64,000 bases of DNA from Trichosphaerium sp. ATCC 40318 (taxonomy: Eukaryota > Protista > Tubulinea): NCBI GenBank assembly GCA_038496445.1, contig JALMLS010000216.1, positions 1-64,000 of the forward strand, written 5' to 3'. The notes below the pieces were generated by a model, which was not told the DNA's origin, searched no databases, and saw only the letters and a list, made by a program, of their open reading frames with translations. Shown one piece after another: positions 1 to 5,428 of the stretch. Positions within the stretch are counted from its first letter, which is position 1, and each line of letters begins with the position of its first letter. Both the position numbers and the translations under genes were made by a program.

Positions 1-54
1 TAAGGAAAAGTAAAAAACCAGAAAAACAAAAAAAAGGTTCGTCGTTCGAGGTTT

Positions 55-2300
55 TTTTACGACAGGAAAATCTAGTGTTCGAACGCGACCGCGAGCTAGC
101 GGTCGGTCAACCGACACGTAAAATACGTGTTCGAAAATATTCGCGAACATACGCCAACTCTGTCAAAAGACAGTGTGCTCCATCTCCAACTCCAAAGCCA
201 ACAATAGGGTCTGTATTGTATTCATCACACCAAACAATAGGCATAGGACAAAGCACAAACCTTTTGGTGAAGGTTTCATAAATAAGCATCTTTTGTATAA
301 TGTTCCTGGGGTTGACTCCTCTGACATTCAAAAACAAGCTATGTGTGACATGTCCAAGGGGCCTTTGTAAAATGAGGGCTTCTTCACTCTCAGATACTTC
401 TTGTTGATAGAGTTGGCAGCAATCCCTCTTAGCAAACCCTTTTGTATTGATGGCTTTATGATGCAGCCATTCAATTTATTGGTGCCTGTCTTCATGTAGC
501 TACATAAAAGTTAAAAATAAAAAAAAAAAAAATAAAAAAACAAAAAACGACGACGTTCGTTTTCGAACACATTGAACGCGTGTTAAAAAATATCGCGAAA
601 ATTGTTACTTACTCCACAAAGAGATGGAAATCTGAATCATTGCCAAAGCTCAAGGAATCTCTAAAATGGACCAAAAGAAGGGCAATGTAGTACCAAGAAT
701 CTGTGACATGAAGTCCCATGGCTGTGTAGAATATGCCAGTCCAGAGTAGCACCTGCCAATACAACTGTCTCCACTTGCAGCTTATAATCCATCTATTTTT
801 TTCTTTCTCCTCTACCTCCGATTCCTCATCTCCGTGTTCTCTCAGCATGGGTTCGTGCTCCTTGTAATCTCTGGTGTAGTTGCCTTCGAAGTGCATCGGC
901 TTCCACCACTTTTCTTCATCCGAGGAGTAGATTTTTCTGACGTCTTTGATAAACTTCTGCAGTTGGTCTACTCCTTCAACAAATGGAAATCTCTCCTAAA
1001 GAAACAAATTAATTTAAAAAAAAAACAAAAAAAAAACCCCAAAAAGCCAACGATTTTACAACAGGATATTTAAGTGTTCGTACACGACCGCGAGCTCGCG
1101 GTCACACGTTCGACACATGAAAACTGTGTTATGAATACTTTAGGGAAAAAAATCAAAAAAATAATCAAAAAAAAAAAAATCAGAAAAAAAAAAAAAAACA
1201 AAAAAAAAAAAAAAAAACAAAATAAAACGAACACGGCCCGCGCGTGTATGTATCGGAAAACGTACCTTGAATGCTGCCTTCAGCTTGTTGTTAGGAGTTA
1301 TTTGAGACTCCAACACATTATCAAAGCTGGCAGCAAAAAACCCATTTAGGCATCTCTTCATCCTCTTGATGGGCATGGTTTTAGCATAAACCAACTGGTT
1401 GGCTATGATAACACCTCTACATAGATAAATTAGTTGAAATGAATTAAAAATAAAAAAAAAAACAAAAAAAAAAAAAAAAATATAAATGGCAGCTACGTTT
1501 ATGAACATGCGCCGCGCGTGTTGCGTCGAACGCGAACTTTAATGGGTAAAAAAAAAAAAAAAAAAATGGACAAAACAAAAAAAAAAGCAAAAAAAAAAAA
1601 AACAACCAACTTACTCAAAACCAAAGATAACATCTCTGTGTTCTCCAATGAGAGTACCCACAATTTTTGTTTCAGTGTTGTGGTTTCCATGGGTACTCAC
1701 AATCATCCAACCAGGACTTGTTGGAGCTAAAAAGAGTATTAGAAGTGGCACAGCAAATAATTACAACTAACGAAAATACAAACACGGGTTTTTCGTGTTA
1801 AAAATATGACCTCGAGCTCGCGGTCGTTAACGAACACATTAAAAACGTGTTATGTTAAAAAAAACAGCAAGCTTGCAGTCAGTTATAAAGAGACTTTTAA
1901 AAAAAAACGGTTTTTAAAAAAGTACACACTTTTTATGTGTACGAAAACCGACCGCGAGCTCGAGGTCAGGTACGAACACGGTAAACATGTGTTGAATACC
2001 ATATACCGAGCAAGCAGTCAGTTATAAAGCAAGACTTTCAAAAAAAAAAAAACGGTTTTTAAAAAGTACACACTTTTTATGTGTACAAAAACCGACCGCG
2101 AGCTCGCGGTCATGTACGAACACATAAAAAGCGTGTTTAAAATCGTACAGCGAGCTCGCGGTCTGTAAAAAAAGCAAAACAACAAAAAAAAAATTAAAAA
2201 AAAAGTACACAATTTAATTGTGTACCAAAACCAACCGCCAACTAGCGCGACTTTCGTACACGCGATATACGTGTTCTAATGCCGCGGCGAGCTCGCTGTT
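55..2300. repeat. Dispersed and tandem ~80-140 bp module centred on palindrome GACCGCGAGCTCGCGGTC
   Basis: Perfect copies at 1086-1103 and 2094-2111; one-mismatch copies at 87-104, 1808-1825, 1950-1967; partial copies near 2150 and 2287; tandem duplication of ~140 bp starting at 1875 and 2014. Confidence 0.9.
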
Positions 2301-2722
2301 GAAAATTAAAGCAAAATAAAACAGTGTGAACCAAAACCAAATGAAAAACAACGCACACGCGTTCTGCGTGTTACGAAACCCTCGTTTGGGTTTGGTTCTA
2401 CCATGCAAAAAAACCGCATGGTAACGAAAAAATCGTACACATGAAAACCGTGTACAAAAACCGTCATTTTTTTTCGAAATTTATTTGAAAAATTAGGGGT
2501 TTTGAAAAAACCATTTAAAAGCAAAAAAACCCCCTTTATTAGTCTTTAAAAATTAAAATAAGACTAATAAAGGGGGTTTTAAAAAAAACAAAGAGTAAAA
2601 AAGAGGTTAGTACCTAGTACTCTCTTTCTCCTGAGCCTGGGCTTACCATCAGCTTTTTTGGAGGGCTCATCCTCATCAGAAAACTCAATATTTATAAGAG
2701 AGAGATCTTCATCTGAGCTCAT
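153..2722 (-). CDS. Multi-exon gene of the element, possibly a transposase (weak Kyakuja/KDZ-like resemblance); 3' end outside the window; one frameshift near 475
   Basis: GT-AG exons 2722-2614, 1726-1615, 1416-1266, 995-613, 499-153 splice in frame (MSSDEDLS...PTSPGWMIV...GVIIANQLV...ERFPFVEG...YMKTGTNK). One extra A at ~475-477 would continue to IEWLHHK...PIVGFGVGDGAHCL. Confidence 0.55.
2526..2580. repeat. Perfect 21-bp inverted repeat with 13-nt loop
   Basis: AAAACCCCCTTTATTAGTCTT (2526-2546) and AAGACTAATAAAGGGGGTTTT (2560-2580). Confidence 0.9.
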
Positions 2723-3040
2723 CCTTGATTTATGAAAAGTCAAAAAAGTAAAATGAGGCTTTTTTTCCCCCAATAATCGCGTTGAGAAATAGACAGGAAA
2801 ATTTCGTGTTTCGAAATGTGAATCGGAAATTTCGCCTGTTTAAAAAAAGTAAGAAAAAAATGAGAATTTGACAGTTTGCAAGATTGTTGATGAGGTTCTG
2901 GGTTTGTAAAAAACCCTATCTTGCTGTAACCCTACAGGGAGATTGTATGTGCAAAAAACATAAAAAAAAGCCAAAAAAATCGAAAAAATTTTACAACAGG
3001 GTAGAGTAGTGTACAAAAAAATACGGTTGGTACATACTCC

Positions 3041-3264
3041 TAAACCCTAACCCTCTTAAACCCTAATTGGCTTCTAAAGTTTTATCTTAATTAATATTGT
3101 TGTATACTAAGATTAGGTTTTAGATAATGATTACAATCAGTAACTTAGGGCTAGGGTTAGGTTTATAACCCTAATCTATATTAGGGTTAGGGTATACTGC
3201 CTTTTTAAACTCTAGAATAGCTAGGGTTGAAGCATGCAACCCTAATCGGAATTAGGGTTAGGGG
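3041..3264. repeat. Telomere-like TTAGGG/CCCTAA motifs in alternating orientation
   Basis: taaaccctaaccct, ttagggctagggttagg, aaccctaatctatattagggttaggg, aaccctaatcggaattagggttagggg. Confidence 0.85.
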
Positions 3265-3764
3265 CAGTGTTTATGTATGGCACTTTGTTCAATTACCTTT
3301 TATACTTGGTTTGTAATGCGTTTTATTTATTACTGTACTGAGGTAGCACTGCGCTTCCAAAATGTAGTTTCACTTTGTTTTTTCTATTTAGTAATTTTTT
3401 TTGTTTTAACGCACAGCACTCGACTAGTTTTAGTGTAATAGTGTTATAAAAAATGTAGTAAGTGCTACCCAGTGATTGTACGGTACTACAATGTAACTCG
3501 CTATCAAAACTTGCTATTGCACATTCAGAACGTGTAGCGATCGTGAACAGGCTGTAAACACGTTATTTTTAGCAAACAAAGCAAAATACGCGAGCTACAT
3601 ATTGTTACAGACATAACGAGGTAACACCAAGGGCTTATACACGCGTTGGCGCACTCGCAACAGCCAATAAAACGTGATTATGTCCACCTTGAAACTAAAA
3701 GAAAATCGGCGGAAAATTGTGCGTTTTTGCTTAACTCGTCTAGAAATTGTTAACATAGCAACAA

Positions 3765-5428
3765 ATGGCCAAGGTAGGAAAGGAAGACCCAAGGTACGGC
3801 GACGGCGTTACAAAACAACTTCGCTTTACGTCGCTGTTCCCTCACTTGTTGGTAGGTGGCTTGTAGAAAGCCGACAAGACGGAAAGAACGTTAACCAATG
3901 GCATTGGTACGCTTTTGCTAAACCTTTGCTATTTTTTTTTCTTCACGCTGTTTTATACATTTATACGCGTGCACTTTCACTCCGTTATCCATTGGATGTA
4001 ATGCCGAATCGCGTTGCTGCCTTTTTACGTTTTTTGTGCTTCTCCTCCGTTGAGCGTCAGTATTAAATTACTAAATCGTATCAGGACTGAAAAAAACCTC
4101 TTTCCTCTGGCCAAGAAGGCATTCACCGACCTTTTCAAAGACATGCAAGTTCCACCACTTGCGCCTGCCGACAAACTCGTCATTAAGACGATGGATAGCA
4201 TTGACGGCGATGTTACATTACAAGGACGCAAAGTACGTTTTTATTTTTTGTGAACAAAAATAACATTTTTGCTTTAAAAATTATTAACATTTGACGTGCC
4301 ATGTATTTTACTATACAACGACATTCTTAAGCTTCAAGTAGGGTCGCGCATTTTTCTTACATGACATTACGATCAAACTAAAGTGGGAGGGCGAACGTAA
4401 TGGAATCAAGGCCAAGGGACTAGTTAAAATTATTGACATCATCTCAGATGATGATGACTGGGTGGTACGCCATTATCGTGACATTATATATTGCTTCAAT
4501 ATTTTTTATTGTACACTTGTTTTGCCGAAGCAGAAAAAAAAACAAAAAACAGACCAGTGGAATTAAAACGCATTGGATAGATTCAAATCACATTGGAAAA
4601 GGAGACTAAGGAGGGGAGGGAAATGAAGGAGCACTTGCGTGCCACAAAAAAAGATTTCTTCAAAACAAAGGTTAAAACTGTGATGGACGCTATGAAGGAT
4701 GGTAAAACTTTTTCTTCTTGGTTTTTTTTTTGGTTATCTTGTCAATTATTTCTAAAGAGCTGATATAGAGTGGCTCACACTTGCCAAAGCTGGTCCTGGT
4801 GCTGTGAAAGCTAAATCCATCGCTCCAGAGCCAGTTGCAAAACCTCCAGCTGGGAAGAAGTTCTCGAAAGACTTCAGGACTGTCAATATAAAATTGACAT
4901 TTAATTGCCCTGCAAAAGTGCGTTGATAACTATTTGTCTGAACTTTTATTTGTATCGGTGTCTCTAACAAGCAACTAGATGTTGTATGGTACTTTACTGG
5001 ATAGCCAACGTATGTCTGCTGTGACTGGAAGCCAGGCCATCATAGCCAAGGGTCTCGGAGACTTTTCATTATTTGGTGGAAGCATCACTGGCAAAACTAC
5101 CAAACTTGTAGAGAACAAGTCCATCGAGCAAGATTGGAGATTTAACACCTGGCCAGAAAACCACTTCAGTAAAGTAGTAATAAAACTAGAAGCTGACGGA
5201 GGACGTACTACACTGACACTTGTTCAAGCTGGTACTTTTAGTTTGGTTTTTTTTATTTGCCCCCTCTTTGGGAATTTTATTACTTGATTAGTGCGCATAA
5301 TGAAACGCTTACGCTTGAAAATAGGTGTTCCTTCAGATGATTATGATAGAACACGTTCAGGATGGATGAGGAATTTTTGGCAGCGATTGCGCGCCGCATT
5401 TGGTTGGGGATTTTCTCTCAAAAACTGA
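3765..5428 (+). CDS. AHSA1: Activator of Hsp90 ATPase (Aha1), multi-exon
   Basis: Spliced N-terminus MAKVGKEDPRWLVESRQDGKNVNQWHWTEKN; C-terminal START-like domain FSLFGGSITG...IEQDWRFNTWP...GWMRNFW. Confidence 0.93.

Follow-up and report, generated by a model that had tools for sequence, protein, structure and literature searches.

The intron of the Plasmodium var genes, a subtelomeric family, has a regulatory role. The chromosome ends of Saccharomyces cerevisiae carry Y' elements, units of 5.2-6.7 kb that have internal telomere tracts on their centromere side, contain an internal tandem repeat and an open reading frame (ORF), and are amplified by recombination (PMC13177704). Introners, non-autonomous transposons whose insertions make introns, are described as similar blocks of palindromic build shared by several introns, also in aquatic protist hosts (PMC9860276, PMC12130899), and in a screen for them similar introns in paralogous genes were filtered as false positives, with the var intron cited as such a case (PMC9860276). 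In this study we describe a locus that invites comparison with each of these systems, in Trichosphaerium sp. ATCC 40318, whose assembly (GCA_038496445.1) comprises 70 Mb in 642 contigs. The stretch of DNA analysed, called the window below, is the first 64 kb of contig JALMLS010000216.1 (C13 in our numbering), and the locus lies at the extreme start of this contig, where window positions 1-3040, read on the minus strand, are the 5' part of a 13-exon gene and the proximal part of one copy of a repeat unit that we call family A. An earlier note on this DNA had described a transposon-like gene with introns built from one palindromic module, and had offered two explanations: subterminal transposase-binding arrays that are spliced out of the element's own mRNA, or an Introner-like element that repeatedly created or invaded the introns. 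The explanation that we favour, with moderate confidence, is a different one, a subtelomeric Y'-like repeat unit that carries an orphan gene, the old introns of which harbour a palindromic unit that is private to the family and prone to slippage.

Results

Family A comprises at least 16 copies of a unit longer than 6 kb. Searches with exon 4 of the gene recover 15 open copies at 91-100% amino-acid identity and one copy broken by a stop, together with paralogues at 41-48%, and the 18 copies compared as DNA are 92-99% identical with their introns included. The introns are retained in every copy of the unit. On large contigs the copy is found at the contig end with the 3' end of the gene outward: the copies on C2, C3, C13, C46 and C52 are at contig starts and on the minus strand, and those on C5, C59, C101 and C217 are at contig ends and on the plus strand, the exception being a pair of copies on C154. 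In all 14 copies with a readable 5' junction, (TTAGGG)1-4 and TTTA are followed by the identical first base of the element, and upstream of this junction the flanks vary from copy to copy. In the window the junction consists of short interstitial telomere-type repeats (3041-3066, minus strand; TTAGGG when read in gene sense), immediately next to the first base of the element on its proximal side, and of the fixed 5' terminus of the unit (3009-3040, minus strand), which begins GGAGTATGTACC in gene sense. On its 3' side the unit grades into shared mosaic blocks. Neither terminal inverted repeats nor target duplications were found for the unit at the examined copies. The description of the gene as transposon-like is thus not upheld, since the exon-level searches described below also found no transposase domain and the unit has a fixed start after TTAGGG, a place at contig ends and a fixed orientation.

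The features of the gene copy in the window all lie on the minus strand. An upstream and 5' untranslated region (2723-3008), delimited by repeat finder family D13 and by eye, precedes exon 1 (2614-2722, ATG at 2722), which encodes a short peptide, acidic and then basic (RLRRKR). The donor of exon 1, GTACTAAC at 2613, is unchanged in 17 of 17 copies; a GTAAGC upstream of it is missing from three copies. Then follow intron 1 (1727-2613, 887 nt, phase 1), exon 2 (1615-1726), intron 2 (1417-1614, 198 nt, phase 2), exon 3 (1266-1416), intron 3 (996-1265, 270 nt, phase 0), exon 4 (613-995, 128 codons), intron 4 (500-612, 113 nt, phase 2) and exon 5 (153-499), and the gene leaves the contig at its start, inside intron 5 (1-152, phase 2). 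Introns 1-4 of this copy are GT...AG and frame-consistent at every junction. Elsewhere the gene extends to 13 exons over about 5.4 kb, with exons 6-13 read in L019, L013 and L014. Exon 5 of the window copy is frameshifted by the loss of 1 nt from the A-run at 330-334, and exon 6 is frameshifted in L019, our reference copy; in the copies on C438, C46 and C602 every exon checked is open.

Introns 1, 3 and 5 contain a nested palindrome of about 77 nt around GACCGCGAGCTCGCGGTC. Read in gene sense, this module opens with an AT-loop hairpin whose stems are ACAC/GTGT; after a short spacer comes the 18-nt core, and then either a second hairpin or a CTGTYGTAAAA arm. Its basic unit is about 50 nt, that is, the AT-loop hairpin plus the 18-nt palindrome centred on GAGCTC, and it is the second flanking hairpin that brings it to about 77 nt. 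The asymmetric CTGTYGTAAAA arm lies 3' of the core in all four cases that could be scored. The block that the earlier note had aligned between introns 5 and 3 was recovered by the repeat finder as family D16 (55-131 against 1054-1130, 77 nt, 75% identical), one module in each intron, with cores at 87-104, where there is one mismatch, and at 1086-1103. The further copies that had been reported in intron 1, two of them in tandem, are there as well: the modules at 1782-2186 are tandem, with a higher-order unit of 144 nt, and were detected as three copies of family D11 (1782-1851, 1924-1993 and 2068-2137) and as a tandem pair of family D9 (1899-2042 and 2043-2186). Intron 4 keeps the tail of the block, as had been noted, in the form of a hairpin only (559-583, ACAC...GTGT); intron 2 has T-tracts and a decayed hairpin without an intact core, and a partial module arm lies at the 5' end of the unit (about 2985-3012, again family D13). 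Over the whole gene, modules are present in introns 1 (several), 3, 5, 6, 7 and 12, and decayed or hairpin-only forms in introns 2, 4, 10 and 11.

This module is private to the gene family. Cores with at most three substitutions from GACCGCGAGCTCGCGGTC start at 87, 1086, 1808, 1950, 2094 and 2146, the last four in the tandem modules of intron 1, and the remaining 60 kb of the window has none. Genome-wide there are 118 sites with at most one mismatch, compared with 0 for the reversed control, and all of the approximately 50 core sites listed, out of the 118 counted, are on contigs that hold a family copy, as are 52 of 52 genome matches of the 77-nt block. By the matches listed, the genome-wide search that had been proposed found the module confined to this family, whose introns it has entered, and not as an ordinary scattered satellite, and these core and block matches placed it in no unrelated gene. 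These introns do differ from the rest of the window, since the first 4 kb is several-fold denser in A/T runs (13 runs of at least 10 nt, against 26 in the other 60 kb) and contains 20 of the 46 GC-containing 7-bp hairpins.

The modules fold stably (z -2 to -8), and the intron 1 unit at 2060-2145 forms a single long hairpin of -38.4 kcal/mol (z -8.4). They start 13-130 nt inside their introns, the T-tracts and ends differ among introns, and the module ends are loosely inverted, which is best seen in intron 6. Inspection by eye showed no duplication flanking the modules, around which the DNA has diverged too far for empty sites to be compared; between paralogous modules the flanks are 20-25% different.

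Diversity among the copies separates the exons from the introns. In 18 aligned copies, nucleotide diversity (pi) is 0.016 in exons and 0.049 in introns, and codon positions 1, 2 and 3 have values of 0.013, 0.010 and 0.027, respectively. The pooled ratio of nonsynonymous to synonymous diversity (pN/pS) is 0.19, with a pS of 0.062 that is close to the intron pi. The exons are under purifying selection, and the introns with their modules drift at about the neutral rate. The low exon diversity, the variable third positions and the pN/pS thus indicate a selected coding gene with real introns. Within family A, pi is 0.056 in cores, 0.068 in their flanks and 0.049 in other intron DNA, the cores resemble their surroundings after a split by CpG status, and constraint on the module is not detectable. 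Many cores of intron 1 are visibly decayed, and stem mismatches are G-T in 15 cases and A-C in 15, with no strand bias. Whole units also come and go: a 145-nt unit of intron 1 is absent from C46 and C602, and so is a 52-nt hairpin-plus-core unit of intron 7 that is flanked by 16-nt direct repeats. Such gain and loss of units is of the satellite type and explains hairpin-only introns such as intron 4. As a separate observation, CpG sites in the element introns (L019 4394-9263) have a pi of 0.097 against 0.047, about twice that of other sites, which hints at cytosine methylation of these repeats.

Two further subfamilies, B and C, have modules of their own. Exon 4 of subfamily B is 41% identical to that of A, and introns 1-5 are at identical residues and phases (1, 2, 0, 2 and 2) in both. 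Introns 2 and 3 of B are 69 nt long and coreless; its core, GGTCGCGAGCTCGCGACC, forms 50-nt arrays in intron 1 and is present as a single copy in each of introns 4 and 5, so that the set of core-bearing introns is not the same in A and B. Genome-wide, 11 of 11 sites of the B core are on B-family contigs. Subfamily C was read from one 5' fragment in L023 and otherwise from coordinates; its core, ACGTTCCGAGCTCGGAACGT, occurs in intron 1 arrays and, by coordinates, in later introns, and all 33 genome sites are on C-family contigs, in several introns. The GAGCTC centre is common to the three cores, and it is flanked by dyad-symmetric sequences that differ among them (GACC...GGTC in A, GGTC...GACC in B and GTTCC...GGAAC in C). 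Because intron positions match between A and B and introns 2 and 3 of B are without the module, the introns predate the modules, and their occupancy turns over. The comparison of intron positions that the earlier note had called for, made here against subfamily B, therefore leaves standing its suggestion that the module invaded these introns, and does not bear out the suggestion that it created them.

A second conserved structure lies near the donor of intron 1. The first 150 nt or so of this intron can be aligned over A, B and C, whereas the adjacent exon 1 cannot. This stretch includes a hairpin, or palindrome, whose 21-bp stem is perfect and whose loop is 13 nt long (2526-2580, minus strand; -30 kcal/mol, z -6.0). 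The hairpin has a pi of 0.006 against 0.05 for introns, and in 17 copies only 3 of its 54 sites are variable, compared with 415 of 2160 sites (19%) elsewhere (P=0.008). In the stem, four pairs have changed on both sides between A, B and C and none on one side only. Intron 1 thus has the stable, roughly 21-bp stem maintained by compensatory changes that is expected of microRNA-like or mirtron hairpins. The hairpin occurs only in this family, no other genome site lies within two mismatches of its 21-nt arm, and Rfam returned nothing at threshold, only sub-threshold hairpin look-alikes. These sequence comparisons make a function of the hairpin probable, whether it is exerted by the DNA palindrome or by the folded RNA. 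We also asked whether host introns in general are structured near the donor and set this explanation aside, as only a weak trend was seen (mean z -0.47 against -0.11, P=0.07).

The product of the gene resembles no known protein clearly. Homology searches were run exon by exon. Pfam gave no family in 11 exon-level translations, which covered all exons but 8, 9 and 12, and no transposase, helicase, nuclease or DNA-binding domain was found in the exons by Pfam, profile and PDB sequence searches. The PDB sequence searches and a metagenome scan were blank, and a word search with exon 4 gave no match. A profile of exon 5 run against 1.84 billion proteins returned one doubtful match, to a repeat protein with a short, repeated ISQIACF-like motif, which we judged non-homologous. 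A protein language-model search gave nothing with exon 4, and with exon 5 it led to NurA-type nucleases with a score of 0.89, under the tool's line of 0.9, which is a weak lead. The AlphaFold model of exon 5 is unusable (predicted local distance difference test score, pLDDT, 37). Exon 1 encodes basic patches resembling nuclear localization signals (NLS) in subfamilies A, B and C alike, and the C-terminal tail has such patches too, which suggests that this orphan protein is probably nuclear.

The surroundings of the unit form a subtelomeric mosaic, in which blocks are parted by 1-4 TTAGGG/CCCTAA units, some of them in both orientations; examples are window 3041-3270, L015 5430-5560 and 7290-7310, and L023 3600-3830 and 5215-5245. 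At L023 4350-5215 (C308:30349-31214) there is the start of a subfamily C gene, with exon 1, the hairpin and a tandem palindrome array of about 50-nt units. This gene is cut inside intron 1 by a short TTAGGG tract, next to which a family A unit begins, and the junction resembles a break that healed and was then captured by a new unit. The sole non-terminal placement seen is on C154 (23900-37900; L019 and L021), where two family A copies, 98.9% identical over 4.3 kb, lie tail-to-tail inside a 149-kb contig, the second of them ending in intron 6. An insertion of about 3 kb with inverted ends occupies the 3' flank of one copy of this pair (C154:29759-32729, from about 9760 in L019 to about 2730 in L021). 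Its gene, of several exons, has a stretch like a zinc finger (YYRC...C) together with DGTF and TDGE motifs that recall MULE transposases; the MULE reading was not confirmed, as Pfam gave only RYYR-CCHC at E=0.069. In the window, the neighbouring gene at 3760-4200, recognised by eye as Aha1-like (N-terminus of the Hsp90 co-chaperone), served as the local example of host introns; its introns are 62 and about 182 nt long and have GTACG donors, and the donors of the element introns (GTACGT or GTAAGT) are of the same kind.

Discussion

The unit described here resembles the Y' elements of S. cerevisiae in many respects. Both are multi-kilobase units of chromosome ends that have short internal telomere tracts towards the centromere and contain a tandem repeat and a large ORF, and both occur in several sequence classes, as open and broken copies, in a mosaic neighbourhood. 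Unlike Y', whose ORF encodes the helicase Y'-Help1, the unit of Trichosphaerium encodes a protein without a helicase or other recognisable domain, its gene is split by 12 introns, and its internal repeats are palindromic and intronic. The likeness is one of organisation only, with no homology. The unit would sit at chromosome ends with its gene outward, and its start is fixed to the base after a few TTAGGG units. Most likely it spreads by recombination or break-induced replication, an eroded end invading an internal telomere tract of this kind and acquiring a copy of the unit distal to it, a route that we infer because the junction is fixed and the flanks are variable.

The same explanation extends to the introns, which would be ordinary GT-AG introns of the host type, older than the split of the subfamilies, that have been swollen by T-tracts and by the family-private unit of about 50 nt. 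This unit appears to act as a selfish, locally expanding minisatellite or foldback, tandem in intron 1 and single elsewhere, that is gained and lost by slippage between direct repeats and decays near-neutrally within family A; it would also have spread into the separate introns. In common with minisatellites and foldback elements similar to miniature inverted-repeat transposable elements, it has a short unit, tandem arrays of varying number, indels between direct repeats and nested inverted symmetry, and copy-number change of tandem units is seen at both the 144-nt unit of intron 1 and the 52-nt unit of intron 7, with 50-nt arrays in B and C. Unlike minisatellites, it is found as single units spread over many introns of a single gene, outside which it does not occur, and the symmetric core comes in a different variant in each gene subfamily. 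Such subfamily-own cores are likely to have arisen by conversion from arm to arm and from module to module.

Several points weigh against this explanation. The placement at chromosome ends is read from contig ends and internal TTAGGG tracts; no terminal telomere array is assembled, and no run of five units is present anywhere in the assembly. The copy pair on C154 is internal and inverted. Splicing of the gene, for its part, is deduced from selection and reading frame. In addition, the single-copy cores, those of introns 3 and 5, vary somewhat less (pi 0.014-0.019) than the DNA that flanks them (about 0.05), although the numbers are small and the difference is non-significant. Finally, each subfamily has one homogeneous symmetric core over many introns despite diverged flanks, which pure neutral drift does not predict, so that conversion or selection must be added. 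The sameness of cores within a gene and their symmetric difference between subfamilies could reflect either conversion or a subfamily-specific factor.

A factor of the latter kind is the subject of the alternative that survives best, which we regard as possible but doubtful. The cores may be bound by a dimeric protein that recognises their sequence, in the simplest case the nuclear product of the gene itself, with each subfamily reading its own core, and their role might lie in autoregulation, in silencing or in a reaction on the own unit like that of a recombinase or transposase. The constant GAGCTC centre, the subfamily-specific dyad flanks and the homogeneity of cores over the introns of each gene would fit this role, as would the basic NLS-like patches and the weak NurA-type lead for exon 5. 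However, the cores of family A are no more conserved than other intron DNA of like CpG content, many of those in intron 1 have decayed, and one core is gone from two otherwise open copies. The exon-level searches also found no DNA-binding, nuclease or transposase domain, and the structure model of exon 5 offers no help. This alternative is the nearest surviving form of the first explanation in the earlier note; the subterminal position proposed there does not hold, as the modules are spread over the introns along about 5 kb and are not clustered near the ends.

It appears unlikely that the palindromes instead act in the pre-mRNA, where they might aid the splicing of long T-rich introns, promote exon skipping or back-splicing, or direct silencing by RNA interference. 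The stable folds and the consistent position of the CTGTYGTAAAA arm 3' of the core would suit such a role, and any pair of palindromic copies on the same transcript could base-pair with each other, which would account for cores that are alike within a gene yet unlike between subfamilies. The intron 1 hairpin, a perfect stem of Dicer size with compensatory changes, points in the same direction. Against this, the tolerated mismatches show no strand asymmetry, pairs that would be G-U in RNA being as frequent as A-C (15 each), and the stem changes between subfamilies are all from one Watson-Crick pair to another, which equally fits a DNA palindrome. Moreover, the 21-nt arm has no other genomic target within two mismatches, no Rfam family reaches threshold, and the cores drift neutrally within A. 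The hairpin also recalls the Plasmodium var intron, in that an intron of a subtelomeric family, here the first 150 nt or so of intron 1 including the hairpin, is kept better than the adjacent coding DNA. It differs in that the gene has twelve introns instead of one and that the conserved element is a covarying perfect hairpin, known here from sequence alone.

We consider it very improbable that the module is an Introner whose insertions made these introns. The alignable block common to several introns, the nested palindrome with loosely inverted ends and the host, which is said to be aquatic, are features of introners, and introners are commoner in aquatic lineages (PMC9860276). However, the module is restricted to one gene family, its similarity ends well before the splice sites, which it does not supply, and the positions and phases of introns 1-5 are older than the A/B split, with two module-free introns of 69 nt in B. 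No target duplications are visible at the modules, and the clean indel between 16-nt direct repeats points to slippage. Similar introns in paralogous genes are also the very class that an introner screen filtered out (PMC9860276). No more weight can be given to an autonomous DNA transposon or telomere-targeting element with the gene as a new type of transposase, since its multi-copy state, high identity, mixture of open and frameshifted copies and sharp 5' end are offset by the lack of terminal inverted repeats, target duplications or, in the exon-level searches, a known catalytic domain and by sites that are not dispersed, a sense RNA intermediate being excluded because the introns are kept in all copies, and the gene, which runs along the G-rich strand towards the end, would have the opposite orientation to that expected from end-primed reverse transcription of sense RNA.

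In summary, this study describes a clean, checkable Y'-style chromosome-end repeat outside fungi, with a telomere-repeat junction that is fixed to the base. It further indicates that a block shared among introns need not be an introner, as a private slippage-prone palindrome that grows in old introns of one gene family suffices. The subfamily-own symmetric cores and the covarying intron 1 hairpin beside a diverged exon would point to sequence-specific reading at the DNA or the RNA level. We tentatively speculate that the intronic palindromes and the hairpin may form a self-recognition code, in which the introns of each subfamily carry a symmetric site, or an RNA duplex, to be read by the nuclear protein or the transcript of that subfamily. 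If this were true, the gene and its cis code would co-diverge as a private regulatory or recombination system for subtelomeres.

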